Positions 14,447 through 64,000 of a stretch of 64,000 nucleotides of DNA are shown here, in pieces. The DNA comes from Macrostomum hystrix (taxonomy: Eukaryota > Animalia > Platyhelminthes). Under the pieces are notes generated by a model. That model was not told where the DNA came from. It did no database searches and was given only the letters and a program-made list of their open reading frames with translations. The stretch lies in the NCBI GenBank assembly GCA_950097015.1, contig CATNEN010000038.1:14508001-14572000 (forward strand), in the 5' to 3' direction. The translations under genes and the position numbers were made by a program. Each line of letters begins with the position of its first letter. Within the stretch, counting starts at the first letter, position 1.

Positions 14447-17400
14447 TCAGGCTTTCTGCTCAGACTCAAATCCTTGATTGACACGAGCGGCACTGGAGAC
14501 CGCAGTCACATAGACTGGATCATGACCGTTGCTATCATCACCTTTGTCATTGTCTGCTTCGATATGAAAAAAAAACAGCAAAATATTTTATATTTCGTCG
14601 AAAAATACATGATTAGAAAACATAAAAAGTTCACTCACCAGCTATGAAACTAATACGCATGTTATTCTTAACAAAGAGTTGCAGAAATCTATAGATGAAG
14701 GCGTACTGATGCTGGAAATTTATGAAAATGATTTATTAATGCTGGCAATAATAAGACGAATAATGTTTAGAATGACTGGAGGTGGATGACAGCACAGGTG
14801 TGGAGTGACTGGAGGTGGATGACAGCACAGGTGTGGAGTGACAGGAGGTGGATGACAGCACAGGTGTGGAGTGACAGGAGGTGGGTGACAGCACAGGTGT
14901 GGAGTGACAGGAGGTGGGTGACAGCACAGGTGTGGAGTGACTGGAGGTGGATGACAGCACAGGTGTGGAGTGACAGGAGGTGGGTGACAGCACAGGTGTG
15001 GAGTGACAGGAGGTGGGTGACAGCACAGGTGTGGAGTGACAGGAGGTGGATGACAGCACAGGTGTGGAGTGACTGGAGGTGGATGACAGCACAGGTGTGG
15101 AGTGACTGGAGGTGGATGACAGCACAGGTGTGGAGTGACAGGAGGTGGGTGACAGCACAGGTGTGGAGTGACAGGAGGTGGGTGACAGCACAGGTGTGGA
15201 GTGACAGGAGGTGGGTGACAGCACAGGTGTTGAGTGACAGGAGGTGGCTGACAGCACAGGTGTGGAGTGACTGGAGGTGGCTGACAGCAAAGGTGTGGAG
15301 TGACTGGAGGTGGATGACAGCACAGGGGTGGAGTGACTGGAGGTGGATGACAGCACAGGTGTGGAGTGACTGGAGGTGGATGACAGCACAGGTGTGGAGT
15401 GACAGGAGGTGGATGACAGCACAGGTGTGGAGTGACAGGAGGTGGATGACAGCACAGGTGTGGAGTGACTGGAGGTGGATGACAGCACAGGTGTGGAGTG
15501 ACTGGAGGTGGATGACAGCACAGGTGTGGAGTGACAGGAGGTGGGTGACAGCACAGGTGTGGAGTGACAGGAGGTGGGTGACAGCACAGGTGTGGAGTGA
15601 CAGGAGGTGGGTGACAGCACAGGTGTTGAGTGACAGGAGGTGGCTGACAGCACAGGTGTGGAGTGACTGGAGGTGGCTGACAGCAAAGGTGTGGAGTGAC
15701 TGGAGGTGGATGACAGCACAGGGGTGGAGTGACTGGAGGTGGATGACAGCACAGGTGTGGAGTGACTGGAGGTGGATGACAGCACAGGTGTGGAGTGACT
15801 GGAGGTAGCTGACAGCACAGGTGTGGAGTAACATGATATGCCTACCTTGGTCTGGACCATGTCAACGCGGCATTTCCGCAGCTGCAGCACGGTGTCATAG
15901 ACACTGACCAGGCTGTTTAGGCCGCTCTCGCCCAGGTCCTGGCATTCCTGCAGCCGTCTGGCCAGCATGTCCATGGCGATAAAGGTGCCGGTGCGGCCAA
16001 CGCCGGCGCTGCAGTGGACCACAATGGGACCGCCGCCGCTGCATTTCTGCATAGAGTGCACCAGACTTAGGAAGTTAGCCAGATCCTCCAGATTAGGCAC
16101 CGCGTGATCCTCCCAGGCCACATACTGCAACAGCGTAGTTTCCATTTGATTGGTTGCAGACTTAGTCGAGCCCTGATTGGCTCTCAGGCGGAGGTTCCGA
16201 ATAAAATAAGTGCCGCAGTTCTCCTGCCCAGTCAGGGTCACTTCGAGGCCGCAGTCCAGGTTGATGCTGTCACCTTCGCTGGTGGGCCAGTACTGCTCGC
16301 ATTTGGCCTGGATAGAATGCGACAGTGATATTAGCGAATCAAGTGAGAAGGATTTTAACGGATTTAGTTAACGAAGAACTACAAGACAGTAACGCATATT
16401 TACTGGAACTTCGCTAACCGACTAAGAATTCTAACAAAAGTTCAATCATGTTTTTTTAACGGAAGTTAGTTAACGAACCGGTTTTCCATCTCGAGAATTT
16501 CTAACGGAGGTTTGTAACAAACCAGTTTTCTACCACGAGAATTTCTAACGGAAGTTTCTTAATGAACCGATTTTCTACCACGAGAATTTCTAACGGAAGT
16601 TTTTTAATGAACCGCTTTTCTACCACGTGAATTTCTAACGGAAGTTTGTTAACGAACCAGTTTTATACCAGTAGTTTTTTTAACGGAAGTCTGTTAACGA
16701 ACCGGTTTCCTGCTACGAGAATGTCCAACGAAAGTTTTTTAACGGAAGTTTAACCTACTAGAATAACTTTAAATGAAAGTTTGTTAACGTACAGATTTTT
16801 TGATATGATACTACGTATGAACTAACGATCATTCTACCAGATAGATTTTGTTAAAGTTGCTTGTATTTTACCGAAAGAAACTATTAGCCTTTCACATGAA
16901 TTGTAACGGAAGTTTTTTAACGGAGGTTTTTTAACGTACTCAATTTTTTACCAATTAGATTTCTAAGGGAAGTTTGTTAACTCACCTTGCCCTTCTCAAC
17001 GCACTCTGTGAGCATAACAATGACCGGCACGGACTGTTCCCAGATCATCTGCCAGTGGTCATTCACAGTACTTGGTCGCGGTCCCTGGCAGGCAATGAAG
17101 CCCGGTCGATCCGCGCTGTCGTACAGACCGCTGACGAAGCTGGCGTTGATGTAGTCACTGTCGCCGCTGAGTCGGACCCGATTAGAATCGTACGGCAGGA
17201 TGTTGATGTAGCGATTCTTCTCACGATTCTCCTCAATCAGGCCGTCACCAGTGCTCAGGCTTCTGGTTAGCTGAGCAGCCTTAGTCTTCAGTTGGGCGTA
17301 CTGCTGATCGCACAGGGAGGCAGCGTCGGCCAACATCCTGGCGGCGTAGGCCAGGAAATCGCTGACTCGCACCGACACCGCCGGCGGAGGCTCAGCTAGC

Positions 17401-20400
17401 GGCAGCGGCGCCGGTGCAGACGGTATTGAAGACCTTCAATTGTGGCGATAAAATAAAAGCGGGCTTAAAAGTAAATATAATAACTGTAACAATTATTGAT
17501 TCCACCTGCCCCAACTGGGCCAGAAGTGCAGCCGACACACCCACCCTCAACTACCACCAGCTAATGCTGGTACCCATTTAACAGCTGGGTGAACTGAAGC
17601 AATGCAGAGTTAAGTGTCTTGCTAAAGGACACAAATTGTTCTATTGGAGTCGGGAATCGAACCCCCGACCTATAAGTCGTGAGTCCGACCAGTTGGGCCA
17701 GATGTACAGCTGTTCAGTCCATGGACTGGGGAGCATCGCATCCACCCTAGTTTCTATCTTCCTTGCTCAAAGACAACAAATTGATTCCCTTCGGTGGAGA
17801 TTCGAACCCATGGCGTCTCGGTGAGAAGTTCAAAGCTTTAAATACTTCCCTGTTTAAAAATCCGTTAAATTAATTTAGCCATACAATTTATTTTAGCACC
17901 TTACATAGGAATATTATTAGAAGATGTAGGAGGCCGAATTGCTTCCGCATTTGGCGACGGCGTTGACTGTGTTGCTGTCGGCGTTTGGTTCGGCGAGCTG
18001 AAAGAAAATGAAAGATTTAAGAACATGTGATTACTCAAACTTGCAAAAAATTACAGCATCGTAATTAGCTTCACGACAAACAAAAATATACCAAAAAAAC
18101 ACAAGCATAAATATAATCAGATTGTTATTGCCCAATATGACAATTATTAAACACTTTTAAGGCCAACAAAAACACCATCACACCGTCACAGCAAAAAATA
18201 TTACTTGAACAACTACTATGCAAAAGGGGGGTGAGTAACGCGTTGACCGTTTGCCTTTCGCACCAAGGTCCCTGAGTTCGATTCCGCGGTGAGGCCGCAT
18301 TCATTTGGGGCGCAGCCGCTGAGAGAAGGCTTGGGGACTTGTCGTGCAATTGAGGGCCAACCTCCAAGGCACAGTGAGAGTGTACACTGCCTGACGATGA
18401 GAAAGTCAGGGCAGATGAACACACCACGGATACTGTACGTGTCTTCGTACAGTATCTGTGTGCGTGTGTGCTCAGGAGTCAGCGAAAGGGGCCGAATAGC
18501 CTCATAATTAGTGTCAGCAAATGATTTGCATGTTGTGTACATTTATTGAGTAAAAAATACCAAGCTTGAAATATTGCTGATTAAGAAAACACTTTAGATA
18601 TTGAGCTTTACAAAGTCTCGAACAAAAATGATTAACAAACTTACTTATTTCGTAATAGCTGAATTTCGTCACTACTAAGCAGAAAAGTACAGCACGAGAA
18701 TGATTAATATATTTAATTTAGAACAATAAAAGTGTGTTCTATTATGCTTAATAACATGAATTTAATAAATTTAATAAAATACAATTGAAAATGAACTGTA
18801 AATATCATATTTACAGTTAAACCATTAAACTGTAACCATTAAACATCTCAGCTTTCCCATCACCATGGAACAGATTTTTCACATATATCTGAAGTTGCAA
18901 GTAAGAATTAAAATAACATTTATTAGTCAACTTCGAACAAGCGAAGCAGCAGCAGCAGCTGTGCAAAGATTAAACAAAATAATTTATTAAGAACTCTGGG
19001 ATTTTTGCACCATTGTAGAGCAGCGTGAGTTTATCGTTTTTTGTCTAAAATAATTTCAAGGAAATATTTTCGAACATGTCTCATTATCTTTAAAAACTTT
19101 TCTACGTTTTGCACGAAAAACATCGTATTTAATTAAAAAAATAGTAACGAAACACACCACAAAAATCAAATAGATTAGGCCAGCAATCACACAAAAAATG
19201 AATCAAAACTTTAATCTAGCGCAAGCCGTACCTGATGCGTCGACGATTCCAAATAAACAGCAGCATGCCAGCAACCATTGCCATGACAACCACCACCGAC
19301 ACTACAATGGCCACCACAAGTGTCACATTGCCGCCACCGCCGCCGCCTCTGGATGTGGTGAATCTGAGCTCGCTCCGAGCACCTGACACAGTCTGGCTGA
19401 CAGGTGTCACTCGCACAGTGTACTCTGTGCCTGCCTGCAGCTGCTGCAGCATCACGGACAGCAGAGGAGCGGACTCATTGCTGCTCGCCTTCTCAATCTG
19501 CAACTCGCCAGTTCGGACAGAGCTGCACTCTTCAGCGAGTCTGCTCACAATGTCCTCGGTGCTGCAGCTGGGCAGCTGGCAGCTGGCTGCGGTCGAGTTC
19601 AGCACCTGCAGCTGCGAGCACTCGGACGGCGAGACCCACACCTGGGAGAGGAGGCGAGGAGACAGGTCGAGAGGGAAAATCTTGATACCTACGGCTGCGT
19701 ACGGCTGTTCAGTCCATGGACTGGGGGGACGACACACCCAAATTCAATTTCCCCACCTAATGCCAACACTTATTTAATTGCTGAGTTAATTGCAGCAATG
19801 TAGAGTTAAGTGTCTTGCTAAATGACACGAAGTGTTTTAGTGGAGTCGGGAATCGAACCCCCGACCTTCGAGTCGCGAGTCCGACGCTCTGACGCCTAGG
19901 CTACAAGCCCCTTAAAAGTATCTAAGTTCTAAACGGTTGGGATATTATTTATTCTGGTGTTATACACGCAACACCGGACAGGTTTTGCTTGCTTTAGTAT
20001 CCATGCAATTAGCCATTTATCAACGTAAAAAAAATACGCTTTAACGAGTACTTTTGACCATAGATTCTTTTTTGTAGGGAACAATACGATTGAAATTTCA
20101 AAAAATGCCATACGCACATACGAAAGCTTATACACACACAGGCACAGTAGGCATATTGTGCCCCCAAAGCCCTTATCCACAGACTAGACTACTGACCACA
20201 AGCTAGCAACTAGCAACAGCCATGAAAATGAAAAAGCTACTCATTACCTATTCCTCCTGTTTACCCCACATATGCTCACAGATTAAGGACATTAAAAACT
20301 ACAATATACAACTGTCTACCATGATCACACAAGAACGGAAAGTCTAATTCAGAGGCTAACGCATTGACCTCATATGAAAATATGGCATATAGTTCTAATT

Positions 20401-23400
20401 GAATCAGTTTGTTATGCTAACTGATTAAAACACTTTTAGATTAGGACATTTATAGAGACACGCGGATACAGAAAAATAGTGCTAATGCTAAGGTAATCTT
20501 TCAGAGTAAAGACTGAAGCAGTGAGTCGTTTTATCTGTAGGGCTGGTCACAGCCAGCGGCCAACGAAATCAAGCCAGTTTTAGGCTAGCCAACGCCCAAT
20601 GCAAACATATAGAGCTGGGAATTCTCAGCCCGCACTGGCCGCCTGTCTCACCCGTATGAGCTGAGCACAGATACTATCGCAACTTGGCGTGAGAACGCTA
20701 ACAGCTGGCAGCAACTGGGTGGGGGGGTGGCATGCGCTGGGAACACAGGGCGAATGTCAGCTGGATGCCAAGCCTCACCTGCACTGCGATGGCCATCAGC
20801 TGCCCGTTGAGCAGCTCGGGCTCCTGGAACTCCACCAGCGCCTCCGTCTGCTGCGCCGTCGCTCGGAGGCTGCGGACGGGTCCGCTGGGAGCCTCCGGAC
20901 TGCGGAAGGCGACGGTGATGGCGGCGCCGAGTCCCGCAAGGTTCACGGGCCACAGGGTGGCGTTGTACTCGGTCCAGGGTAGCAATGAGCTGGAGCTGAC
21001 GGGAACCTCCAGAGCCAACCGGCTGTCGCCAATGGAGAAGGCCTGCAGTGGGACGGGCTGTCCGCAGTCGCTCGTCAGCTGCTCGAGTCGCTGCAGGGCC
21101 TCAGATGGAAGCTGCTGTCGATGCCGCCCGCAGTCGGAGCAGTTCAGCATCCGAGCAGTCGCGCAGCCGCCGACACCGTCTATCCGCAACACGTACTCGA
21201 ACACAACGCCCCGACCTTCAACAGGATTCATTGTCGTCCAGTTGAAGCCGACGCTGCGTCCCGGCACTGGCAGCGTGAGCAGATCGGACACCGCCCTCGA
21301 TGCTCCGTCAGGAAGTCGCCGTACAGCTCTGTCGCTGCAGTCGCCGCAGCCGCCTCCCGTGCAGGCGCAGACGCGGCAGAAGTACACGTGGCCAGGCAGC
21401 GGTGACTGCAGCAGCTGCAGTCTTGTCTGGTGTCCAGGTGCTACTTTGGTGTCTCTGAGCAGTTCAGCGCCGCTCACGAAGTCCAGCAGGCCCCAGACGG
21501 CCGAGTAGTTCCGAATGACGCCGTTCAGCTCCGAGGGCGGCTGCCAGTCGCACAGCAGCCTCTCGGGCAATGACTCGACGCTGAGCCTCACCGACTTTGG
21601 CGGCGTCGGAGCGTCCTCCAGGGTCTGAATGAGCAACAACAGCGGCAGAGAAGGCAGGGCTGAATACACCGCCACAGACTTTACAGTGTAGTTTGAGTAG
21701 GGTCGCAGTGTCTCGAACCTGACGGTGCAGTTTTTGCTGCTGGGGTCCGGGAGGCAGCTGGCCGAGATCTCAGAGCCAGTCTGGACGGTCGCTCTCAGTT
21801 CATTGGAGCTAGAGCTGGCAGTCAGAGTCACATCGATGGCACGCTTGTCCGCAGTCAGCGACATCAGTGGCCTCTTTGGTGCTAAGGTGTGAGAGGTGTT
21901 ACAAGAGGCCATGCAGCATGCAGCATGCAGCGGTTGCTGTGGCAACCAGCAGCCATGAGACCAGATTTACAATATTTCACAAAATCCAAAGGAAGCCCTA
22001 GAAATTCAACTTCCAATTAGCCCAGCACTCACGTGTGGCCAGGCCAGCAGCAATGGTCCGCTCCGGGCTCCTCTGAACGAGGTTTGACTTGTCGGCCACG
22101 GCGGTCACAGCCACTGTCACATTGCGCGAGAACAAGTCGGCCAAGCTGAGCTCATGCTGCAGCTGCTCAAACTGGACCTCTGTCTCCAGCTGGATGTCGC
22201 TTGCCGAGTCTCCTCCATCTGAGCTGGCTGAGCTCCGAGCTGTGAACACGAAACGGTCAGCGCCCTGCGCAGCGCTGGCGGTCCAGTTCAGCCGAAGAAC
22301 AACCTCGGCATGCGAGTCGTTCAGCGCCACCGAGTCTGCGACTGCGCCGAAGGTCGCCAGGTCAGAGCTGAGCAGCGGGACTGGGGAGGGCGGGCAAGAG
22401 AGCGGCTTTGGCAGTGAGCAGGAAACAGAGCTTGTCAATTCTTGGAGAATTGTGTACTCGTATAACAGAACAATTCAAAACATGTCACTTGGACGTGTTT
22501 TAATCAGCAAGTCTAGGAGGCAGTGTATTACGCAGAACAAATCAAAAGCCTTGATAAACAGCTCATGAGTCTGTGAGTGAGTTCACAGCACAGAACCCCT
22601 GAGGCTCCCCAGCGGTGCCAGACTACAATGGAAGGCAGGAGTAGACGAGGTTTGAGAATCTGGTCTCACCAGTGAGCTGAGTGTCCAGTTGGCTTATGAC
22701 TGTCTCGTAGCCGCCCGCCTTCCACACTGCCAAATCTAAGCTGTACACCTGACCAGGTGCCAGGGAGTCGCAGGTGGCGCTCGGCCTCGGTTCGTCTGTC
22801 AGCGAGACATTTCTGAGCACAGCTTCGTCAGCGGATCTGCGGCACCGCAGCTGGTAGGAAACTCGCTGAGTGACGGAAGCCAGCCAGCTGACTGAGATGG
22901 CCGTTGCATTCACAGAGTAGATTGCTGAGCTTGAGTTCACTGAGAACAGCTCTGCAATTCGAGTCAAGCAGTGTGTACTTTTAGAGCGCCTGATTCGACA
23001 GTGTGAGATGCTGCACTAAGGCAGCGATTCCACAGCCCAGCACTGAGCACGGACTCACTGGTCAGCTGTTCCGGCAGCTCCGTGAACGCATCTGGATAGT
23101 CGCCCCGCTTCTGCACAGCCACCCTGACGCTGAACTTTTCTCCTGACTGCAGCGAGTCGCAGGTGGCGAAGGGATCCGAGGATCTCACCTCCGTCACTGC
23201 GCCTGAGCCCTGCTGAGTGCAGGTCAACAGGTAGGAGACGTCTGTCGTGATGGACGGATTCCAGGACACGAAGAGTGAGGTCTGGCTCGAATTGAATCGA
23301 GCTGAGCTGGAGTCGATGGCGAACAGCTCTGCAATGGTCGCGGTGGAAAATCAAACTTGGAGAACTGCGTCAAGGCGTCAGCTGCAATGCAACATTGATC

Positions 23401-26400
23401 AGTCCGTGGACTCACTCGTGAGCGCTGGAGACAGCCGAGTGAAAGCATCCAGAAAGCCCTCCTTCTGCACAGCCACGCTCAGCTCGTAGACCTGTCCCGA
23501 CTGCAGCGAGGCGCAGGTGGCTGATGGGTCTGATGAGCTCACCTTGATGACGTCAGTGGAGCCGGATCGACTGCTGGTCAGCTCGTAAGTGACACCTGCT
23601 GTTTTGGAGGCCACCCATGTCACGGTGATGGCCGTCTGGTTAGCGGTGGCGTTTGCTGAGCTGGCTTCAATGGCAAACAGCTCTGCAATGGAGTGACATG
23701 GCATCTGCACTGTGAGCTGGTATCGCAGATTCAAATTCAGTATGAGCACATCATGAGCAGAGATCTTTTTTTTAAAGGGCTAGAACTTTAACAAATAAAT
23801 ATTCTGCTGAAACTGGTTTAAATTTGTGCTGTAAATATGTACGTGGTGCGCTCTGATTGGCTGAAGGGGTTTCTTGTTGACGAGTAGTTCATTGTAGCAT
23901 TAAAGTTTCTTTGTCGTGACGTTTTGCTCTGCTCTGGCTGATCTGATCTGGAGGAACGCTTTGCACGGCCCGTGACGTGACACTTAGTGCAGCTTATGAA
24001 GTATTTGCTTTAAGTCGAAAGAGTCCAATGCATTGGCAAAATATCAATGAAAATTGAGCCAAAAAAGAACTCACTCGTCAGCTGATTGGGCAGGTGAGTT
24101 ATAGCATTATCATAACCTCCTTTGAGCACAGTCACGCTGACTGCGTAGACCTGCCCAGACTCCAGCGAGTGGCAGGTGGCGAAGGAATCATTTGACGGCA
24201 CAGAGACATCATTGCAGTTCAGCTGGTAAGTGACACCTTCTGTTTGAGAGCCAGTCCATAACACGAAGATGGAGGTCTCAGTGATATTGAAAACTGCTGA
24301 GCTGGCGTCTATGGCGAAAAGTTCTAAAATGGCCGGTCGGGAAATTCATTACATTTACATACATAATGTAATATAATAATAAAATAATGCAGGATGGCTG
24401 CGGGTAATTGCACATCATTTGGTGACACTAGACCTGCAGCCAGCGAGAAGGCACTTTTGCCCATTTCGCTGACTCCGGAGCACACACGCGCACAGATACT
24501 GTAATAAAAATCTACATTATTCGGTCCACCATCTACAAACTCACTGGTGAGCTGACTGCTGAGGCCGATGCTGACGTCATCGAAGCCGCCCTCCTTCCGC
24601 ACCGCCACGCTGAGCTCGTACACCTGGCCCGACTTCAGACGGCTGCAGGTGGCAAACAGATCCGTTGAGTTCACTTTGGTGACATCAGTGGTGCCAGGTA
24701 GGCTGCAGCTCAGCTCGTAAAATACATCCCTCGTTTGTGAGGCTTTCCATGTCGCTGTGATGGTAGTCTCAGTAGCTGTTGAGTTTGCTGATCTGGCGTC
24801 AATAGCCAACAGTTCTGAAATTGAGAACCAACTCATTCTGCACATTGCTTAAGGACACGATTCGTTTTACATTGAGCAGTTCGATTCATTTAGAGTTGTA
24901 CTCGAAAATGCTTATAACCATCTAAATATCTTTTCTTTATCAATTTAAGTTGGTAAGAGAATATGTTACCCTGACTGGACCAAAATGTCTGTTGGAAAAA
25001 CAAGTCGGCCTTACAAAACAGGCTTTTCAAATGCGCTACTTCACCTAGAAGCGGTTTTCCGATTGCTAAGAGAATGGCCGGTAGAAATGAAAGTTATTTA
25101 ATAAAACTCGGTGGAATTGAGCTAAAGTACTCACTCGTCAGCTGATTGGGCAAGCGGGTTACAGCGTCATGATAACCACCATTCTTCAGCACTGTCACGC
25201 TGATTACAAAGACCTGCCCAGACTCCAGCGAGTCACAGGTGGCGAACAAATGGTCAGTTGGCACTGAGACATCATTGCAGCTCAGCAGGTAAGTGACACC
25301 TTCTGTTGCGGAAGGAGCCCAGGACACGAAGATGGAGTTATCAGTAACATTAAACTCTGCTGAGCTAGCTTCTATAGCGAACAACTCTGGAATGGCAGTT
25401 CGGTTGGAATTGTTTATGAAGCATAACTCGCCCAGCAATATCTTAAATTCGCAAACAGAAACTTAAAATAATTTGTGGGCTAAAAATATACCACATTCAT
25501 CAGCTCAATTTAGATGCTGAGTTTACGGGCTAAAATATTTTTGAGGTTCGGTTTGAGGCCAAGCCAGCTTCGCTGTGGCTGCTCAGGTCACAGGCGTCAT
25601 GAACCACGTGAGACCATGCGGGACCATCATGACCAACATCGTGCCGATCCCGAAGGCCAGGACGACGCAGAAAGAAGAGCACTACGGGATCTCGCTGATC
25701 TCCTGTAGCGCAAAGTTATTCAACCGACTGCTTCTCGATCGTCTCCAGTCAGTGCTGGACCCCTAAACACGGAAAAGTTTCCGCTGCAGCGCCGTTCAGT
25801 GACCCCGATCATCGCTCTCATGTCATTGAGGAGGCGTGCATCCACCAGTAACGCTTAACATTTTGTCTTCATTGACTTCCGAAAGGCATTCCACGCAGTG
25901 CTGAGAGCCGCTCTACCTCATGCTTCGTGCCTACGGGGTGCGTGTGCTGTGGTGCAGTAAGAATTCCTGTTCGGGTGCTACAGGGTGAGATATTACCACC
26001 ACTTCTGTGCGTTCTGCCCCTGAATCAGGCCCTCTGCATCGGCTGATGACGGCTTCCTGCTGCGCAGGCGTCTTGGTTGCCGCCGCAACGAAAAGCGCTT
26101 CAGCGTGCTTGGCAACCCCGACGACCTCATCAGTTTGTTAAAGGCGCCCAACGCCAGATTTACAGGCTAGTCAAGGATGTAGCAAGTGCCGGCCTAGTCG
26201 TCGACGCGCTGATAACCGATTTGCTGACCTGACGCGTCGCGGCGCCGACTGGCAGACAAATAAGCTCGCTCGCTGCTAGAAGTTCACCGACCTCGACAGT
26301 CTGGTGCCCGACGTGGAAGACGACCTCACGCTGCGCATAGAACTCGTCTGGACGGCCTACCGGTCTAAAGTGTTTCCCGACCGCAGATGGCTGGGCTGTG

Positions 26401-29206: not shown

Positions 29207-29764
29207 TGTTCAGTGAACGCTGTGCTCAGCAATGCCTCAAGTCGAAAAATTCTCACAAAACAACACTATTTTGGACCGAAGCACAACCAGTAAGTGTCTC
29301 AAATATAGCAAACATTTTAACAAGAAAAAATCTTATCAAGAAATGCACTATCTGTGCAGCGGTAAAGCAAGAATGCAGGCCGCACCAATGAAGAACAGCA
29401 GCCGCTAGCTGTTGGGTCCTTATCAAGCAAACAGTCGAACTGATCGAAGTGGAGCTCGGCATAGCAACATGCAGGAGCACGTTTAGTTTAGGCACTATAA
29501 TAATCAACTAACGGACTAAATAATCACAATACAGGCTTTTTCTTTAGCATAGTCTAAATACTTTATTAATAAAAAACAAAAGCAAAAATCTGCCACGGTT
29601 GGGAAAAAAGATTGTCTGACGAACCTTCGTGTATTTCATCAGAACTCTGATTTGCTTTTCTTTCAAGTTTATAGAATGTTGACAAGCGCATAAATTTATG
29701 ACGAGCAAATTTAGAACTCTAGACTTGACTGACAGCTGGTCTAGAATGTTAGATATCTCAATTA

Positions 29765-52245: not shown

Positions 52246-55200
52246 ATGCGCGGCAGGTCGGCAGCTCATCGAGTTGAGTGTTTCTTTCACTGTTGGCCTC
52301 TTCTTCTGGTCGCTGCTGCTGTTGCTCTGTGTGACGTGGCGGCTGCGCAGACCAGCAGGTGCGGCAGTGCTGACCCTAACCAGGTGGACAGAATTTCATC
52401 TGCTGGTGTTCAGCAACCGGACCAAGGCTACATAATTATAGGCTGGTTGCCTCCAGATCATGAACCAGACAGACATTACTATTATGTTCTGAGGTGCGAC
52501 ACCTGTCCCAATCAGCAGGCGAATGTGACAGGTGTAGAAGATCACACATTCGAAGGTCTTCAACCGGCAACTGAGTACAGCTTCTCGATTCAGGCCGGGT
52601 ATCAGAACTGCACACTGAGTCCTCCATTTGATTTGGTTGGCAGAACCGGTGAGAGTGGCTTAGATTAGATCCATTTGATTTGGTTGGCAGAACCGGTGAG
52701 AGTGGCTTAGATTAGATCCATTTGATTTGGTTGGCAGAACCGGTGAGAGTGGCTTAGATTAGATCCATTTGATTTGGTTGGCAGAACCGGTGAGAGTGGC
52801 TTAGATTAGATACATTTGATTTGGTTGGCAGAACCGGTGAGAGTGGCTTAGATTAGATCCATTTGATTTGGTTGGCAGAACCGGTGAGAGTGGCTTAGAT
52901 TAGATCCATTTGATTTGGTTGGCAGAACCGGTGAGAGTGGCTTAGATTAGATACATTTGATTTGGTTGGCAGGACCGGTGAGAGTGGCTTAGATTAGATA
53001 CATTTGATTTGGTTGGCAGGACCGGTGAGAGTGGCTTAGATTAGAACAATATAAATAAATTATAAGTATTATTAAACATTACTTATTTCCGTAATTAAAA
53101 AATTGTTTACCAAAATATTTTTGTACTAAAGTTATCATATCCTCGCATTTTATCACACAAGCTGTTTTATATTTAATGCCAAAATGACCGGTCTGCAGCT
53201 GGCCTGCACTCTGCAATCACAATAAAATACCCACTGTACTCAAAATCATTTTTATAATAAAAAAGAATCCTCATTTTTGTTTCCAAGGACAAAAATAACA
53301 CGACAAAAGCACTTGTTCTTGCTCAAGAAGATGTTCTTGTCTTCTTGAGCAATATACTCGATTCCCCGTTGTTTAAGTTGACCCAGCTGTTAAATGGGTT
53401 GCAGCAATAGCTGGGTTAGGACAATGGGAGTGTGACATCCTCCCCCAATCCATGGACTGAACAGCTGTACGCAGCCTTTAGAAGCACATACAATAGCTGC
53501 GAATGTGCCACTGTCAGTACATCTGGTCCAGGCAGGTTGTGTGTTAGGTCTCATTGCAGGCATCTAGAAATCAACAGACACATGCAGAGCAGGTATGGAT
53601 GTGAATGCACCTATTGACTTAGACTCAGTAACTCTGCCTGAGAACCAAGTCTTCCCTATTAGCTATAAATAGATAGGAATCTTTCAGAGTCGCTACAACT
53701 GCAGTTTTCATTTTACTGTGTCTCGACCTTTCATTTTTGTGCCTTATAATATGTACTAATATAGCATATTAATTATTTTCACTTGCGAAAATTGGGCAGC
53801 CTATGGCACAGTCGAAGCTATTGCGTGGCGCATCTGAATGCTGCCTACGGCTTTTAAGTCCATGGACTGGGGGAACGCCACACCCACCCTCAATTACTCC
53901 AGCTAATGCTGGTTTCCGTTTTATAATTGGTAAATTGGTGCAATGCAGAGTGAAGTGTCTTGCTAATGGGCACAAATTGTTCCAGTAAAGTCGAGAATCG
54001 AACTCCAGACCTTCAAGTCATGAGTCCCACGCTCTGACCACTAGGCAAGGACCCATCTTTGCATTGAACTGTAGCCATCAGCCAGTCCTAGCGTAAGAAA
54101 ATTCGCTGAAAATCAGTCCAATCTTCATCGGAACAATTGCAAACTTTCCCGTTCCATTTGCAGTTCTGAGCAATCTTCCAGGGACTGTGCTCATCTCGGA
54201 TGTAACTCAGACGAGTCTCAGAGCCCAGTGGGCGGCCTCTCCAGATGTCGGGGTGCAGTACAGAGTGAGCTGTGGTGGCACTGTGAGCAACATCAGCACC
54301 GTGTGCTATGGACTGCAGTCGGGATCCAGGATTGAAGTTAGAGTGCAAGCAGTGAAGGCCGGATTTCCTGACTCAGCTGGCATCTTTCGCACTGCTCTCA
54401 CCAGTGAGTTGCTCTCTGGTTGTGCAACACTCATTGCATGCCGGATGACATCATGAATGCCAATGCTTTAGCTGATAATTCCCCACTGCAATGTTCCAGA
54501 GCCCTACCCAATAGCTGCCAGCCCTACCACATACTCTGTGACTGAGAACGCAATCTCGGTCAACTGGACTGCATCTGCAACTGAGGGTGTCAGGTACCAG
54601 CTGAGCTGCAGCCAATCCGGCTCCAGTGACGTCATCCAGGTAAACTCATCAGATGCTTCAGCCACCTGCGGCCCCCTGCAGTCGGGCCAGGCCTATGAGC
54701 TGAGTGTGACAGTGCTGAAGGATGGTGGCTTCGAGTCCGTCAGCACCAAACTGACGAGACAGCTCACTAGTGAGTATTGTAGTTTTGAAATTGACCTTTT
54801 TTGTCATCAGAATAAAATTTACTTCTCGTTTAAAGCATTGAATTTCACGTATCAGCCTCATCGGGCACTCGGCCCTGGTACCCTGGTAACAACAAGTTAC
54901 AACAAAATGAGTGCTAAATGGGGACAACGTCAGATGGCGCGCTTCAGTGCCACCAAGGGAACAATGTCTGCAACGCGTTAGTCAGGTGCTTTAGCCTCGC
55001 AGAAAATGCAGTCCTCGTATCTCCAAAAGCCAGCCTGTCTCTTCATGAGCAGACCATGCAAGGTGAGCAGCCTAAAGATGGCTGCACGGAGCATGGCCCG
55101 TCAGTGAAATCCACCGCAGGTGCTATTTGGTGGATGGGAGTTGCAACTTTGCCCTCCCAAGCCTCGTCCCTTCGTAACGAGAACGAGGTTCAGGGCCTCG

Positions 55201-58200
55201 TTCCGGACCTTCTCGTAAGCTTAAAAGGCAGCTTGAAGTCCAGTTATCACTCTAGCGTAGTCGTCAGTGTCTACGTCTCGGCGTTGTAAATCGAGACGTT
55301 CTCGACCACGCCTGTCACAGCCCAGCCCTCTGCGGTCGGGAAACACTTTAGACCGGTAGGCCGTCCAGACGAGTTCTATGCGCCGCGTGAGGTCGTCTTC
55401 GACTTCGTCTTCGTCTTGTACAGCTTAGATTTGGCAGTGTGGAAGGCGGGCGGCTACGAGACTGGCATGAGCCAACTGGACACTCAGCTCACCGGTGAGA
55501 ACAGATTCTCAAGCCTCGTCTACTCCTGCCTTCCATTGTAGTCTGGCACCGCTGGGGAGCCTCAGGGGTTCTGTGCTGTGAACTCACTCACAGACTCATG
55601 AGCTGTTTATCAAGGCTTTTGATTTGTTCTGCGTAATACACTGCCTCCTAGACTTGCTGATTAAAACACGTCCAAGTGACATGTTTTGAATTGTTCTGTT
55701 ATACGAGTACACAATTCTCCAAGAATTGACAAGCTCTGTTTCCTGCTCACTGCCAAAGCCGCTCTCTTGCCCGCCCTCCCCAGTCCCGCTGCTCAGCTCT
55801 GACCTGGCGACATTCGGCGCAGTCGCAGACTCGGTGGCGCTGAACGACTCGCATGCCGAGGTTGTTCTTCGGCTGAACTGGACCGCCAGCGCTGCGCAGG
55901 GCGCTGACCGTTTCGAATTCACAGTTCGGAGCTCAGCCAGCTCAGATGGAGGAGACTCGGCAAGCGACATCCAGCTGGAGACAGAGGTCCAGTTTGAGCA
56001 GCTGCAGCATGAGTTCATCTTGAGCGACTTGTTCTCGCGCAATGTGACGGTGGCTGTGACCGCCGTGGCCGACAAGTCAAACCTCGTTCAGAGGAGCCCG
56101 GAGCGGACCATTGCTGCTGGCCTGGCCACACGTGAGTGCTGGCCTATTGGAAGTTGAATTTCTAGGGCTTCCTTTAGATTTTGTGAAATCTTGTAAATCA
56201 GGTCTCATGGCTGCTGGTTGCCACAGCAACCGCTGCATGCTAAAACTGGCCTCTTGTACACCTCTCACACCTCAGCACCAAAGAGGCCACTGATGTCGCT
56301 GACTGCGGACAAGCGCGCCATCGATGTGACTCTGACTGCCAGTTCTAGCTCCAATGAGATGAGAGCGACCGTCCAGACTGGCTCTGAGATCTCGGCCAGC
56401 TGCCTCCCGGACCCCAGCAGCAAAAACTGCACCGTCAGGTTCGAGACACTGCGACCCTACTCAAACTACACTGTAAAGTCTGTGGCGGTGTATTCAGCCC
56501 TGCCTTCTCTGCCGCTGTGGTCGGTCATTCAGACCCTGGAGGACGCTCCGACGCCGCCAAAGTCGGTGAGGCTCAGCGTCGAGTCATTGCCCGAGAGGCT
56601 GCTGTGCGACTGGCAGCCGCCCTCGGAGCTGAACGGCGTCATTCGGAACTACTCGGCCGTCTGGGGCCTGCTGGACTTCAAGAGCGGCGCTGAACTGCTC
56701 AGAGACACCAAAGTAGCACCTGGACACCAGACAATCCTGCAGCTGCTGCAGTCACCGCTGCCTGGCCACGAGTACTTCTGCCGCGTCTGCGCCTGCACGG
56801 GAGGCGGCTGCGGCGACTGCAGCGATAGAGCTGCACGGCGACTTCCTGACGGAGCGTCGAGGGCGGTGTCCGATCTGCTCACGCTGCCAGTGCCGGGACG
56901 CAGCGTCGGCTTCAACTGGACGACAATGAATCCTGTTGAAGGTCGGGGCGTTGTGTTCGAGTACGTGTTGCGGATGTACGGTGTCGGCGGCTGCGCGACT
57001 GCTCGGATGCTGAACTGCTCCGACTGCGGGCGGCATCGACAGCAGCTTCCATCTGAGGCCCTGCAGCGACTCGAGCAGCTGACGAGCGACTGCGGACAGC
57101 CCGTCCCACTGCAGGCCTTCTCCATTCGCGACAGCCGGTTGGCTCTGGAGGTCCCCGTCAGCTCCAGGATCGGCGGCTCGAGCTCGTTGCTACCCTGGAC
57201 CGAGTACAACGCCACCCTGTGGCCCGTGAACCTTGCGGGACTCGGCGCCGCCCTCACCGTCTCCTTCCGCAGTCCGGAGGCTCCCAGCGGACCCGTCCGC
57301 AGCCTCCGAGCGACGGCGCAGCAGACGGAGGCGCTGGTGGAGTTCCAGGAGCCCGAGCTGCTCAACGGGCAGCTGATGGCCATCGCAGTGCAGGTGAGGC
57401 CTGACATCCAGCTGACATTCGCCCTGTGTTCCCAGCGTATGCCACCCCCCCACCCAGTTGCTGCCAGCTGTTAGTGTTCTCACGCCAAGTTGCGATAGTA
57501 TCTGTGCTCAGCTCATACGGGTGAGACAGGCGGCCAGTGCGGGCTGAGAATTCCCAGCTCTATATGTTTGCATTGGGCGTTGGCTAGCCTAAAACTGGCT
57601 TGATTTCGTTCGCCGCTGGCTGTGACCAGCCCTACAGATAAAACGACTCACTGCTTCAGTCTTTACTCTGAAAGATTACCTTAGCATTAGCACTATTTTT
57701 CTGTATCCGCGTGTCTCTATAAATGTCCTAATCTAAAAGTGTTTTAATCAGTTAGCATAACAAACTGATTCAATTAGAACTATATGCCATATTTTCATAT
57801 GAGGTCAATGCGTTAGCCTCTGAATTAGACTTTCCGTTCTTGTGTGATCATCGTAGACAGTTGTATATTGTAGTTTTTAATGTCCTTAATCTGTGAGCAT
57901 ATGTGGGGTAAACAGGAGGAATAGGTAATGAGTAGCTTTTTCATTTTCATGGCTGTTGCTAGTTGCTAGCTTGTTGTCAGTAGTCTAGTCTGTGGATAAG
58001 GGCTTTGGGGGCACAATATGCCTACTGTGCCTGTGTGTGTATAAGTTTTCGTTTGTCCGTATGGCATTTTTTAAAACTTCAATCGTATTGTTCCCTAAAA
58101 AAAAGAATCTATGGTCAAAAGTACTCGTTAAAACGTAATTTTTTACGTGGATACATGGCCAATTGCATGGATACTAAAGCAAGCAAAACCTGTCCGGTGT

Positions 58201-60803
58201 TGCGTGTATAACACCAGAATAAATAATATCCCAACCGTTTAGAACTTGGAGACTTTTAAGGGGCTTGTAGCCTAGGCGTCAGAGCGTCGGACTCGCGACT
58301 TGAAGGTCGGGGGTTTATGTCCCGACTCCACTGAAACAATTCGAGTTCTTAAACAAGACACTTAACTCTGCATTGCTGCAATTAACTCAGCAATTAAATA
58401 AGTGTTGGCATTAGGTGGGGAATTTGAATTTGGGTATGTCGTCGCCCCAGTTTATGGACTGAACAGCCGTACGCAGCCGTAGGTATCAAGATTTCCCCTC
58501 TCGACCTGTCTCCTCGCCTCCTCTCCCAGGTGTGGGTCTCGCCGTCCGAGTGCTCGCAGCTGCAGGTGCTGAACTCGACCGCAGCCAGCTGCCAGCTGCC
58601 CAGCTGCAGCACCGAGGACATTGTGAGCAGACTCGCTGAAGAGTGCAGCTCTGTCCGAACTGGCGAGTTGCAGATTGAGAAGGCGAGCAGCAATGAGTCC
58701 GCTCCTCTGCTGTCCGTGACGCTGCAGCAGCTGCAGGCAGGCACAGAGTACACTGTGCGAGTGACACCTGTCAGCCAGACTGTGTCAGGTGCTCGGAGCG
58801 AGCTCAGATTCACCACATCCAGAGGCGGCGGCGGTGGCGGCAATGTGACACTTGTGGTGGCCATTGTCGTGTCGGTGGTGGTTGTCATGGCAATGGTTGC
58901 TGGCATGCTGCTGATTGCCTGGAAGTATCGGCGCGGAAGGTATGGCTTGTTGTAGAGGGAAGTAATTATAAATATTTTTGTGCGAGCTCGTAGGGAATCG
59001 GCCCACTCTACTGCCCTCGCATCTGGTGACACCTCTCACCCACCCTGGACTCAAAACGCACCCAAAATCCCACATATTTGCTTCCCCAACTGATTGCTTT
59101 TCACCCTGCTGTCTACCCTGCTGCTTCAGTTTATATCAATGAAACTGTTTGTTTTAGCGAAATTCTGGAATTTTATTTATTTTAATTATTCGAAAATCAC
59201 CGACCATCACAGAAGCTCTAGCTCCTAGCCTTGTGCGGCCGCGCATTGTAAAACATGCGGCTGACAACTTAAGCACGCTGAAGTCCTGGTTGTCCACGAG
59301 GATGTGAAGAACAGCCTAGTACACTGGTGGCTGATTGCCATTTGCGAGTTTTACCATAGACTAAAGATATTTAAAGATATGTTTGCAGATGAGACACCTG
59401 TGTTTGCGGATGAGACTCCTGTGTTTGCAGATGAGACACCTGTGTTTGCGGATGAGACTCCTGTGTTTGCGGATGAGACTCCTGTGTTTGCGGATGAGAC
59501 TCCTGTGTTTGCGGATGGGACTCCTGTGTTTGCGGATGGGACTCCTGTGTTTGCGGATGGGACACCTGTGTTTGCGGATGGGACACCTGTGTTTGCAGAT
59601 GAGACAGCTGTGTTTGCAGATGAGACAGCCGTGTTTGCAGATGAGAAACCTGTGTTTGCAGATGAGACTCCTGTGTTTGCAGATGAGAAACCTGTGTTTG
59701 CAGATGAGAAGCCTGTGTTTGCAGATGAGACAGCTGTGTTTGCGGATGAGACACCTGTGTTTGCAGATGAGACACCTGTGTTTGCAGATGAGACAGCCGT
59801 GTTTGCAGATGAGACTCCTGTGTTTGCGGATGAGACTCCTGTGTTTGCGGATGGGACTCCTGTGTTTGCGGATGGGACACCTGTGTTTGCGGATGGGACA
59901 CCTGTGTTTGCAGATGAGACAGCTGTGTTTGCAGATGAGACAGCCGTGTTTGCAGATGAGAAACCTGTGTTTGCAGATGAGACAGCTGTGTTTGCGGATG
60001 AGACACCTGTGTTTGCAGATGAGACACCTGTGTTTGCAGATGAGACAGCCGTGTTTGCAGATGAGACTCCTGTGTTTGCGGATGAGACTCCTGTGTTTGC
60101 GGATGGGACTCCTGTGTTTGCGGATGGGACACCTGTGTTTGCGGATGGGACACCTGTGTTTGCAGATGAGACAGCTGTGTTTGCAGATGAGACAGCCGTG
60201 TTTGCAGATGAGAAACCTGTGTTTGCAGATGAGACTCCTGTGTTTGCAGATGAGAAACCTGTGTTTGCAGATGAGAAGCCTGTGTTTGCAGATGAGACAG
60301 CTGTGTTTGCGGATGAGACACCTGTGTTTGCAGATGAGACACCTGTGTTTGCAGATGAGACAGCCGTGTTTGCAGATGAGACTCCTGTGTTTGCGGATGA
60401 GACACCTGTGTTTGCGGATGAGACACCTGTGTTTGCGGATGAGACTCCTGTGTTTGCGGATGAGACACCTGTGTTTGCGGATGAGACACCTGTGTTTGTA
60501 TATAAGAGAGGCCTTTTTGTTTGACACCTTTATTTGTAAAGTTTCTCTAGTTTCACGTCATCTGTGCCGAACACCTGGATTTTGACCTAAACCAACTCCC
60601 TCCACTCACTCAGCGCCACAAAGCAAGCGCCAGCTGCCACATTCGAGGCCAACGCCAGAGCTGACGCTCGAAGCAGCCGCAGAGACAGCGCGCACGAGTA
60701 CGACACTGTGGGACAGCCGCCGCTGCCACCCGCTGATGCTGTGCAGATTGTGACCATCAATGGAGCTCAGTTTGAGCTGCGCCCATTGCAGAGAAAGGAA
60801 TAG
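52246..60803 (+). CDS. Phosphatase-less FN3 receptor (copy 3): signal peptide-shortened FN3 array-TM-cytoplasmic tail with YDTV and PPLPP
   Basis: Exons 52246-52648, 54164-54403, 54500-54769, 55724-56131, 56276-57393, 58530-58939 (TM, phase-2 donor AG|GTATG) and predicted terminal exon 60614-60803 (acceptor CTCCACTCACTCAG, in phase, 62 codons then TAG). All junctions are phase-compatible with no internal stops. Confidence 0.75.
52624..53044 (+). repeat. 47-bp splice-donor-spanning repeat, about 9 units (copy 3)
   Basis: Same unit as 41970-42813. Confidence 0.97.
54890..55400 (-). mobile_element. Duplicated 3' part of the degenerate RTE-like element, cut by a deletion
   Basis: Reverse-complement match to ~26315-26825. 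Confidence 0.85.
55418..55494 (+). pseudogene. Remnant 3' end of FN3 exon 9 lacking its original acceptor
   Basis: Encodes [15 protein letters not shown]…SQLDTQLT followed by G|GTGAG, matching ~22670-22746. Confidence 0.85.
59380..60497. repeat. 21-bp intronic minisatellite, about 53 units
   Basis: Unit GTGTTTGC(A/G)GATGAGAC(A/T)CCT. Lies between the TM exon and the predicted tail exon of copy 3. Confidence 0.97.
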
Positions 60804-62150: not shown

Positions 62151-62766
62151 CACACGCAGTCCTCTCCCACCACTCTTAGTGGGCACAGAAGTCTCTTTTA
62201 AGCTTGCCATTTTTATGGCGATATTTTTTAGTGTTATGTGAGAGTTTTGCAGCCAAGTCTCTGCTTTTCTACTGTTGTCAGTAGTCTGAATTGTATCTCT
62301 CACATATTTTAACGATGCCGATATTTGTGATTCTGCAGAAGTTTTTTCATCGGATAGATCAGAAATTTTAGCCGCGTTCTGGATATTCAGGGCAATTGAT
62401 TGAATCTTTTGTGAGAAACAGAAAAGAAAAAAATGCGAGCAATTGAAGTACCTCGTTGTCTTTCTACTGTTAACGTGTCTAAACTAACTTGTCTAAACTG
62501 ATAATGCTTTATCAGAGTATCAGGTAATTGTGTCCGTGAGATTGAGCCCGTCATAGGGCAGTTTTCTTTCCTAGGTAGATAAGAGCATGGCAACATGCGG
62601 TTGTGTCTTTACTAATCGGCTCCGAACCCTGTACATTCGATTATAAAACTTTTGTTTTTAAATGTCGCTATACATGCAATTTACCGGCGCTTTTCCATTC
62701 GAATTCAAGACCTGAAGCACGGGAACAGGTGCTATCCTCCACTGGGACTAAATTATCGATCGAACA

Positions 62767-63975
62767 ATGCACAGCAGGTCGGCAGCTCATCAAGTTGAGT
62801 GTTTCTTTCACTGCTGGCCTCTTCTACTAGTCGCTGCTGCTGCGGCTCTGTGCGACGTGGCGGCTGCGCAGGCCAGCAGGTGTGGCAGTGCTAATGTTAG
62901 CCAGGTGGACAGAATTAAGAGTGCGACAGTGGATCGATGGGGTCTGAGTTTTCTAGTTGCTGCCTGGGCGCCTCCGATTTACGAGTCGAACAGACGTTAC
63001 AACTATATTCTGAGGTGCGTCACCTGTCCCAATCAGGTAGTTAATGTGACAGGTGTAGTTGAATACACATTCAGCGGTCTTCAACCGGCAACTGGGCACA
63101 CCATCTCGATTCAGGCCGGGTATCAGAACTGCAGCTTGAGTCTTCCATTAAGTCTTCTTGGCAGGACGGGTGAGTGGGCTCGTACAAGCCATGTGCTCTG
63201 ACCGCTTCTCGCAACAAGATCCCTGAGTTCGATTCCCCGGCCAGGCCACATTCATTTGGGGCGCAGCCGCGTAGCGAAGGCTTGGGCGGCTTGTCGTCCA
63301 ATTTCAAGGGACAGTGAAATTTTACACTGTCTGACGATGAGAAAGTCAGGGCTGGTATACGCCTGTGTGAGCGTTTGCTTGCGTATAGTATCATAGTATC
63401 TGTGTGCGTGTGTGCTCAGGAGTCAGCGGAATGGGCAGAATGGCCTCCTCGCTGGCTGCAGGTCTAGTGTCACCAAATGATGTGCCATTGTCCACAGCCA
63501 CAGCCCTCCTGCAATTATTATTATTATTACTACTCATATTATGAGCTGGGCCAGCTCCTCCGAAGGTAAAACTGAATTCGTCTAAAAAATTTAAATAAAT
63601 CAATATTGCTATCAAGTTTTCAGAGACCCTGTTAGTTGAGATGTTGCAGACTGCCCACCCATGTAGATCCTGAACGAGATCTAGTCACGTGCGAACAAGC
63701 TACAAATATTCATTTCGCATAACCGCCTTTTGCAGCTCTGAGCACTATCCCCGGCACTGTGCTCATCTCGGATGTAACTCAGACGAGTCTTAGAGCCCAG
63801 TGGTCGGCCTCTCCAGATGCTGGGGTGCAGTACAGAGTGAGCTGTGGGGGCATTGTTAGCACCGACAGCACCGTGTGCCGTAATCTGCAGTCCGGATCCA
63901 GAATTGTGGTAACGGTGCAAGGAATCAAGACCGGATTTCCTGACGGAAATGCAACATTTGGCGCTGCTTTCACCA
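62767..63975 (+). CDS. Fourth, more diverged paralogue (copy 4), exons 1-2; continues beyond the window
   Basis: Exon1 62767-63169 (403 nt) and exon2 63736-63975 (240 nt) have the same sizes, phases and signal peptide as copies 1-3. Confidence 0.85.
63205..63530 (+). mobile_element. SINE family A in intron 1 of copy 4
   Basis: GAGTTCGATTCC B-box, family body and (ATT)n tail. Confidence 0.8.
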
Positions 63976-64000
63976 GTGAGTAACCTACTTTAAATTCTGT

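Follow-up and report, generated by a model that had tools for sequence, protein, structure and literature searches.

A 64-kb window of the Macrostomum hystrix genome (contig C38, positions 14508001-14572000, free of N, in a 220-Mb assembly of 42 contigs) was found to carry four genes, here called c1 to c4, that fit within 53 kb, open with a near-identical head of three fibronectin type III (FN3) domains and differ in their C-terminal ends, a phosphatase being present in one member only. An arrangement of this kind had been proposed in an original prediction made from the sequence, and it was borne out. Judged from sequence, the sharing of the head by four genes is far beyond chance. The reading that we favour, at a probability of about 0.55, is that the cluster represents a receptor family of the Macrostomum lineage built on the ectodomain of an R3-type receptor protein tyrosine phosphatase (RPTP), in which siblings lacking the phosphatase share the head. 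Coordinates are those of the window; numbers marked ext carry the same numbering past position 64000, into a further 38 kb that was fetched. Database searches were carried out exon by exon, and exons were joined only for frames, lengths, the ratio of non-synonymous to synonymous divergence (dN/dS, omega), the head tree and one local BLASTP that compared the lectin-like domain of c2 with Macrostomum lignano proteins.

The four genes were confirmed, to the base, to open with exons of 403, 240 and 270 nt in phase 1. Exon 1 encodes the signal peptide and the membrane-distal FN3 domain; exons 2 and 3 are in phase 1 and have GTGAGT donors in all copies, exon 3 of c4 falling just outside the window (ext 64056-64325). 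Pfam fn3 was detected in every head exon (E = 2e-6, 4e-4 and 4e-7 for exons 1, 2 and 3), and an AlphaFold model of exon 1 had a pLDDT above 90 at residues 40-134 and matched many FN3 structures in Foldseek with a probability of 1.00. Further copies of the head were sought in a six-frame search of the whole 220-Mb genome, which returned these four places and two distant paralogues on the same contig. The positions were as follows.

29206-28804, minus strand: exon 1 of c1 (in all four copies, 403 nt that start at the ATG and end at a GTGAG donor)
41592-41994, plus strand: exon 1 of c2
52246-52648, plus strand: exon 1 of c3
62767-63169, plus strand: exon 1 of c4
41335-41591, plus strand: 5' flank and 5' untranslated region (UTR) of c2, common to c2, c3 and c4 and not found in c1
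51989-52245, plus strand: the same flank in c3 (95%)
62520-62766, plus strand: the same flank in c4 (about 77%)
C38 15.514 Mb: paralogue B (gene B), head identity 48%
C38 18.82 Mb: paralogue C, head identity 36%

The likeness of c1 to the other copies begins only 9 nt upstream of the ATG (29215). A 47-nt tandem repeat was also noted, starting in the last 26 nt of exon 1 (c2 41969-42817, c3 52623-53048, c1 28614-28829), with the result that the end of exon 1 and its GTGAG donor recur many times within intron 1. The copy number of this repeat varies among the genes, and RNA contigs splice at the first donor.

The phosphatase-bearing member is c1, whose model was built from open frames, GT-AG sites and phases.

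14447..29206, minus strand: c1 gene, 16 exons, 1818 aa, with signal peptide, FN3 array, transmembrane (TM) segment and one protein tyrosine phosphatase (PTP) domain
27573-27334 (240 nt) and 27237-26968 (270 nt), minus strand: exons 2 and 3, FN3 domains 2 and 3 of the head
22670..25386, minus strand: exons 4-9, six extra single-FN3 exons of 249-282 nt, all phase 1
22380-22033 (348 nt), 21881-20779 (1103 nt) and 19641-19232, minus strand: stalk, comprising exon 10, exon 11 and the TM exon
17433-16986 and 16307-15846, minus strand: PTP exons (Pfam Y_phosphatase)
14711-14639, minus strand: end of the PTP domain (HQYAFIY)
14556-14447, minus strand: tail and stop

As had been predicted, c1 lies on the minus strand and ends in an intact PTP domain in an open frame (Pfam Y_phosphatase, E = 2.7e-29 and 1.2e-31 on the two exons); position 14447, given earlier as the start of the cluster, is the exact end of its stop codon. 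The protein has a single TM segment and one PTP domain only, with catalytic motifs that include QTxxQ. In the WPD loop the sequence is WED, which retains the acid Asp, and the domain looks catalytically competent as far as its residues can tell. There was no close second copy of this domain in the genome, the next best match being 47% identical and 12.6 Mb away. The extracellular part consists of FN3 alone: Pfam fn3 was detected on exons 1, 2, 3, 11 and the TM exon, exons 4-9 are paralogous FN3 exons, a weak Pfam match was obtained to the third FN3 domain of Dep-1, and no other extracellular domain was present. Among single-domain PDB chains, the first PTP exon scored best against PTPRB (107 bits), VE-PTP and PTPRJ; for the second, the PTPRO, PTPRH, PTPRD and PTPN4 single-domain chains all scored 62-69 bits, which did not separate the subtypes. 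We predict that c1 is an R3-like RPTP. The C-terminal YxN-Phi motif was sought in the c1 tail, which reads ...DPVYVTAV... and contains no YxN. One RNA contig running off exon 3 carries the junction of c1 exon 3 to exon 4 at its loose end; because this contig runs on into c1 exon 4, c1 is taken to be expressed. A 33-nt tandem repeat (14770-15833) occupies an intron inside the PTP-coding region; it is open in several frames and lies between predicted exons.

Copies 3 and 4 were modelled as siblings in which the shared head, stalk and TM segment are followed by a short tail.

52246..60802, plus strand: c3 predicted gene, 7 exons, 992 aa, with open frame, conserved splice sites and matching phases
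52246-52648, 54164-54403, 54500-54769, 55784-56131, 56276-57393, 58530-58939 (TM) and 60614-60802 (tail and stop), plus strand: c3 exons
60614-60802, plus strand: c3 tail exon, 62 aa and stop, a homologue of the c4 tail exon (ext 67630-67810)
55417..55494, plus strand: remnant of exon 9 in c3, only its 3' 78 nt, left by a deletion
62767..64000, plus strand, continuing into ext: c4 predicted gene, cut by the window, 963 aa; exon 1 62767-63169, exon 2 63736-63975
ext 64056-64325 (exon 3), 64568-64834 (FN3), 65339-66465 (fused FN3/large exon), 66615-67018 (TM) and from 67630 (tail): remaining c4 exons

Both expectations for these genes held, namely that c3 would end in a TM segment and a short tail without phosphatase, and that c4 was cut by the window. 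The c3 TM exon has a phase-2 donor at 58939, and the tail exon has a good acceptor and is matched to it in phase. Completion of c4 from the genome gave a tail of the c3 type and no PTP exon; a PTP exon was sought downstream of c3 and c4, and none was present, including within 38 kb past c4. The two tail exons are related (tblastn E = 3e-14), and a whole-genome search found only these two. Their likeness forms an island that begins 12 nt ahead of the acceptor, takes in the whole exon (88% over its first 123 nt) and ends about 45 nt past the stop, in flanking DNA that is unalignable. Conserved blocks within the tails are KQAPAATF.ANAR, SAHEYDT[V/L]GQP and VTIN..QFE, and the only conserved tyrosine motif is HEYDT[V/L], which has H at position -2. 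The 23-aa TM segment is the same in c1 and c3 and differs at one position in c4 (V to M); it contains no charged residue. When the tail exon was considered as a degraded c1 juxtamembrane exon, the comparison was unsupported (BLASTP E = 1.9), and a search for protein homologues of the c3 tail exon gave no candidate among proteins of 34-108 aa. In the last intron of c3 there is a 21-nt tandem repeat (59380-60498; DETPVFA in one frame) that is open in several frames and lies between predicted exons.

Both genes also bear marks of loss. Copy 3 has no equivalent of c1 22748-26308 (exons 4-9), a deletion of 3.6 kb that takes six exons and leaves a partial one, and c4 contains a decayed FN3 exon (about ext 64899-65168) with a frameshift and a lost donor. 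Such features would suit an explanation in which c2, c3 and c4 are neutral by-products, that is, young or decaying partial duplicates and chimeras of one functional RPTP gene; they might be transcribed yet would serve no function, and their head likeness would reflect recent copying only. The richness of the region in tandem repeats and the LINE fragment that it appears to hold point the same way. However, the frames of 547, 992 and 963 aa are intact with every used splice site kept, and at a synonymous divergence (dS) of about 0.3 the likeness between c3 and c4 survives in exons only, the tail exon being the island described above. We regard this explanation as doubtful and return to it with the selection data.

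Copy 2 has a different end.

41592..45637, plus strand: c2 gene, 5 exons, 547 aa, with a 3' UTR to about 45959-45979
41592-41994, 43933-44172 and 44273-44542, plus strand: exons 1-3, head
44821-45223, plus strand: exon 4, mucin-like TEAP linker and first part of a lectin-like domain
45310-45637, plus strand: exon 5, rest of the lectin-like domain, TM segment, 11-aa tail RSRRRLASQPA and stop
44553..44820, plus strand: chimera junction in intron 3, where likeness to c3 ends at 44552 and likeness to gene B starts at 44806

Contigs of four runs, which came from two studies and were classed by guess as probable RNA, were aligned to 40800-46300. On c2 they cover exons only, with GT..AG joints at 41993/4 to 43932/3, 44172 to 44273, 44542 to 44821 and 45223 to 45310, and all four introns were seen spliced in contigs from the two studies. 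Because the GT..AG joints lack the introns, the contigs stem from spliced RNA. Over the lectin and TM exons they showed 0 mismatches, which indicates that they come from c2 itself and not from its 90% paralogues. The view of c2 as an untranscribed relic was ruled out by these in-frame spliced contigs, and the splicing also counts against a neutral by-product. Splice sites deduced from the sequence (acceptor 44809; intron 45222-45286/89) were overruled by the contigs in favour of 44821 and 45224-45309. Some contigs differ from the reference: those of runs X1 and X2 do so in exon 1 at 41880 and 41910 (a 3-nt in-frame deletion and a G>C change), and in exon 2 those of X1, X5 and X6 agree with c1/c3 at three sites that are specific to c2 (44114-44116). 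These differences represent either alleles or transcripts of sister copies.

The two halves of c2 have different relatives. Its segment 41335-44552, which begins 257 nt ahead of the ATG and runs 10 nt beyond the donor of exon 3, matches c3 51989-54779, and from 44806 onwards c2 is 91-94% identical to the 3' end units of gene B, 1 Mb away (C38 15.53 Mb), across the linker, both lectin-like exons, the 3' UTR and a 21-nt satellite. The stretch between the two parts is unique filler, and the acceptor in use (AG 44819-44820) sits in former linker coding sequence. Gene B itself has a diverged homologous head of three FN3 domains, mucin-like linkers and about 13 lectin-like domains. From the pattern of matches, c2 is the product of illegitimate recombination that joined a c3-type 5' half to the 3' end of a lectin-array gene. 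The proposed derivation of the cluster from an R3 RPTP does not cover c2 as a whole, since the 3' half of c2 comes from a separate gene with an FN3 head and a lectin array. Between c2 and gene B the lectin exon had an omega of 0.42-0.44, a value that also argues against c2 being a neutral by-product.

The satellite, of about 150 units, follows c2 (45878-49100) and is 92-95% identical to one behind the last lectin unit of gene B (C38 about 15532300-15533000), which implies that it moved along with the 3' end when that was duplicated. In gene B, exon 1 (C38:15514030-15514740) contains six tandem copies of an 18-aa unit, SEPSNTRCGSAHPDQLDQ, that repeats the start of the mature head, including the first cysteine.

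Assignment of the lectin-like exons of c2 was indirect. Pfam gave no match to them at E <= 0.01 or at E <= 1. With a Macrostomum lignano homologue, 28 of the 30 nearest named clusters in the ESM Atlas were Lectin_C (score 0.93-0.94), and the M. lignano homologue P0155 gave weak PDB matches to CD302, CLEC4 and the mannose receptor. In c2 the WTGL motif is kept, as are the C0-C0' and C1-C4 cysteines; the C2-C3 pair is missing. The AlphaFold model of the lectin-rich M. lignano protein P0157, from a 7-row alignment, had a mean pLDDT of 34.8 and was too poor for a fold search. The 3' module of c2 is probably a divergent C-type-lectin-like domain. Of the earlier description of c2 as ending in a C-type-lectin-like domain, a TM segment and a short tail, the junctions were confirmed by the spliced contigs and the identity of the domain is probable only; the suggestion that this is a signalling end did not stand, since it consists of an extracellular lectin-like domain and an 11-aa tail.

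Comparison of the copies pointed to sequence exchange. Copies 1, 2 and 3 are 95-98% identical, introns included, and c1 and c3 share about 6.7 kb in inverted orientation, again with introns. The matching blocks are c1 19258-22747 with c3 58913-55417 (96.9% identity), c1 26309-28829 with c3 55407-52905 (95%) and c1 28689-29215 with c3 52763-52237. High c1-c3 identity, about 97% in the stalk and TM, begins 9 nt upstream of the ATG, continues until 26 nt short of the donor of the TM exon and drops abruptly at 19258, the inner end of the TM segment; over the same length c3 and c4 are 71-77% identical. Synonymous divergence is 0.03-0.05 between c1 and c3 and about 0.3 between either of them and c4. 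The relationships are discordant, in that c3 and c4 share the tail exon, and c2, c3 and c4 the 250-nt 5' flank, both of which are missing in c1. Two mosaic segments were located.

44394..44446, plus strand (nt 122-174 of exon 3): conversion tract in c2, where c2 equals c4 against c1 and c3 at 8 informative sites
52378-52442 (c3), 29074-29010 (c1), 41724-41788 (c2) and 62899-62963 (c4): hypervariable patch, nt 133-197 of exon 1, codons 45-66

In the hypervariable patch c3 has about 20 private changes in 65 nt, between flanks that are 96-100% identical; the AlphaFold model would place the patch in strands A and B of the first FN3 domain and in the AB turn that joins them. In the TM exon dS to c4 is 0.12-0.15, below the value of about 0.3 for the remaining gene, which suggests an older exchange there. 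As read from these alignments, non-allelic exchange, and not simple descent, is what keeps the heads alike; the grounds are the discordant head and tail relationships, the tract borders, the mosaic patches and the intermediate TM region. The prediction that near-identical ectodomains are maintained by exchange was likewise sustained by the borders, the patches and the discordance.

High identity that includes introns, together with the many tandem repeats at or near the borders, would also be seen if the copies were an assembly or haplotype artefact, that is, misplaced alleles or collapsed or expanded repeats. This explanation is hardly credible. Orientation, exon content and 3' ends vary among the copies, which lie in an N-free window of a genome assembled in few contigs; in addition, RNA contigs carry c2-specific variants and the junction of exon 3 to the lectin exon, and one carries the c1-specific junction of exon 3 to exon 4.

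The head and the stalk were found to diverge in opposite ways. In the head, exons had diverged by 6.05% and introns by 1.16% between c2 and c3 (Fisher p = 1.7e-11), by 4.9% and 3.1% between c1 and c3 (p = 0.03), and by 3.9% and 2.75% between c1 and c2 (not significant). In contrast, over the stalk and TM of c1 and c3 the exons had diverged by 1.8% and the introns by 3.3% (p = 0.006). Taking exons against introns in these pairs, the head is changing faster than its own introns while the stalk and TM are conserved. Counts of non-synonymous to synonymous changes in exon 1 were 11:0, 20:4 and 24:4, which are small numbers, and part of this signal is exchange of the patch and not point substitution. 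An omega above 1 in exon 1 is not claimed (31 changes, 4 synonymous; rough binomial about 0.15). Head omega among c1, c2 and c3 was 0.9-1.3; against c4, omega was 0.5-0.65 in the head and 0.2-0.26 in the TM exon. An explanation by neutral decay would accommodate the former range and the omega of 0.75 between the c3 and c4 tails, but not readily the overall range of 0.2-0.65 against c4 or the stalk exons that are more conserved than introns.

Relatives were present in M. lignano, which provided the nearest database proteins to the head (about 50% identity). A profile-free HMMER search with exon 1 against 1.8 billion representative proteins gave three M. lignano proteins matching at the N-terminus. 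P0006 and its cluster (PAA68155.1 and others) have a signal peptide and head of the cluster type, four FN3 domains and then a lectin-like domain; lectin-ended bodies with the shared head include P0006 and P0154. The partial models P0158, P0005 and P0159 have the head type of P0006 (85-90% identical) followed by a long FN3 array. On these models M. lignano likewise puts one head type on two different bodies, and the presence there of a lectin-ended gene with a cluster-type head is difficult to reconcile with neutral by-products. P0030 and P0155 are B-type proteins. In a maximum-likelihood (ML) tree of heads, B-type heads joined across both species (support 96/91) and cluster-type heads grouped by species (100/100 and 100/99), a pattern that would fit concerted evolution or repeated recent duplication. 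Lectin-like domains repeat this pattern: they are 90-91% identical between c2 and gene B, 85% between P0006 and the last domain of P0155, and 74-77% between species. The head joins the lectin-like domain after the third FN3 domain with a linker in M. hystrix and after the fourth without a linker in M. lignano; since the join sites differ, the fusion may have occurred more than once. For residues 955-1265 of P0155 no protein homologue was found at E <= 1e-10 within the length range searched. In paralogue C (C38:18816300-18821000, minus strand), stalk and TM exons accompany the 36% head and exon 2 is apparently missing; no PTP exon lies near it, the nearest PTP match on the contig being at 27.2 Mb.

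The original prediction had placed the cluster beside the vertebrate paired receptors, which include SIGLEC5/14, SIGLEC11/16, KIR-L/S, PIR-A/B and LILR. The likeness lies in neighbouring genes, ectodomains kept near-identical by gene conversion, tracts that end near the membrane and cytoplasmic ends that differ. In M. hystrix, however, the fold is FN3 and not Ig, the ITIM versus charged-TM/ITAM-adaptor logic is missing, the 'inhibitory' arm would be an enzyme, and c2 swaps extracellular modules and not tails. By this comparison the analogy would fit the genetics and structure and not the signalling logic, because there is no ITIM or ITAM and no charged TM residue and because c2 differs outside the cell. 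Tails opposed in the manner of the vertebrate pairs, as originally proposed, were therefore not found in c1, c3 and c4.

A fuller version of the analogy would make the cluster an independently evolved flatworm system of paired or variable recognition, with the FN3 head shuffled among phosphatase, tyrosine-motif and lectin receptors for self/non-self, pathogen or mating cues. In such a system of immune, allo- or gamete recognition, c1 would be inhibitory, c3 and c4 would dock phosphotyrosine, c2 would be a lectin co-receptor or decoy, and the head would be under conversion and diversifying selection. The clustered genes with a homogenised ectodomain and different tails speak for this proposal, as do conversion tracts that stop at the TM border, the hypervariable patch, the greater divergence of head exons than of introns, the tyrosine motif kept between the c3 and c4 tails and the same head-sharing pattern in M. 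lignano. Nevertheless, a search of the tails for ITIM, ITAM and ITSM was negative, the conserved tyrosine has H at -2, the uncharged TM segments of c1, c3 and c4 are 93-95% identical, and the c2 tail has just 11 aa. Furthermore, the heads of M. lignano contain no hypervariable patch comparable to that of c3, the recognition role draws on sequence and analogy, and a search of the literature yielded no flatworm precedent. This proposal is distinctly unlikely.

The reading preferred here is instead that of a Macrostomum receptor family founded on an R3-type RPTP ectodomain. Illegitimate recombination joined its modules, which ectopic gene conversion or segmental copying later overwrote, with tract borders that coincide with module borders. 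The head would be a ligand-recognition module under diversifying or relaxed selection. Copy 1 would turn ligand binding into tyrosine dephosphorylation, and its non-catalytic siblings would recognise identical or slightly shifted ligands. Candidate roles for the siblings are those of a decoy or ligand sink, of an endocytic receptor that relies on the YxxPhi-like HEYDT[V/L] motif, or of a partner that associates with c1 via the common stalk and TM and thereby tunes its activity.

Several points weigh against this reading. RNA support covers c2 and one joint of c1; c3 and c4 are predicted from sequence, and the loss of six FN3 exons in c3 and the decay of one exon in c4 can be read equally as decay. 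Phosphatase activity of c1, with its WED loop, is assumed, and ligand binding is likewise only predicted. Substitutions are few in the recent pairs, whose omega is close to 1; taken alone, the excess in exon 1 is not significant, and the c3-c4 tail omega is not clearly below 1. The likeness of heads within a species could stem from independent recent duplications and not from conversion. The M. lignano FN3-array models end before their C-termini, and a head on a phosphatase is established for c1 only.

The R3 RPTPs comprise PTPRJ/DEP-1, PTPRB/VE-PTP, PTPRO and PTPRH, and Ptp10D and Ptp4E in Drosophila. Copy 1 resembles them in an ectodomain that is all FN3, one TM segment and a single PTP domain; it differs in being clustered with head-sharing paralogues that lack the phosphatase, in its WED loop and in having no C-terminal YxN-Phi. 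To our knowledge no such cluster has been described for R3 RPTPs, and a literature search returned no RPTP-derived paired cluster and no relevant work on Macrostomum RPTPs. Non-catalytic RPTP products, such as phosphacan from PTPRZ1 and truncated PTPRO forms, also present an RPTP ectodomain without phosphatase and can compete for ligand or modulate the full-length enzyme. Those products arise within one gene by alternative splicing or promoters, whereas the siblings described here come from distinct genes, with a 5' flank of their own and a tail exon dedicated to them. Copy 2 resembles the type I membrane proteins CD302, layilin and the CD93/thrombomodulin group in ending with a single lectin-like domain followed by a TM segment and a short tail, but three FN3 domains and a mucin linker precede this end, and its lectin-like domain, which Pfam Lectin_C misses, has no second disulfide and no EPN or QPD motif. 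A link to Macrostomum adhesion proteins with a C-type lectin domain was considered and rejected, as the published architectures differ and have no FN3 and no phosphatase.

Other sequences were noted in the window. Between c1 and c2, a small open reading frame (ORF) at 31242-31550 on the minus strand encodes a GxGxGxG glycine-zipper membrane segment and is unrelated to the receptor family; presumably it resembles a Mic10-type protein of MICOS. Just upstream of the shared 5' flank of c3, an ORF of 265 aa (50635-51429) has a reverse-transcriptase-like YADD motif and is probably the LINE fragment mentioned above. Outside the receptor cluster, ORFs at 9494-12960 on the minus strand resemble a four-pass membrane protein of the LHFPL/tetraspan type and are interrupted by a tandem repeat with a 22-nt period (9828-12442).

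RPTPs are usually studied as single genes, and their ligands are hard to find. Here the same head occurs on four differing receptors, one a phosphatase, two without phosphatase and one lectin-like, and the cluster displays exon shuffling and gene conversion with borders at the borders of protein modules. The diversification of the head while the stalk is conserved provides an internal control. If the siblings modulate the enzyme, the locus would supply an RPTP with decoys or dominant-negative partners encoded by genes of their own, and would represent a non-vertebrate counterpart of paired receptors that is based on FN3. Macrostomum is amenable to RNAi and in situ hybridisation, which makes this idea testable. 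Were the siblings inert, the locus would still be a clean example of how new receptor architectures arise.

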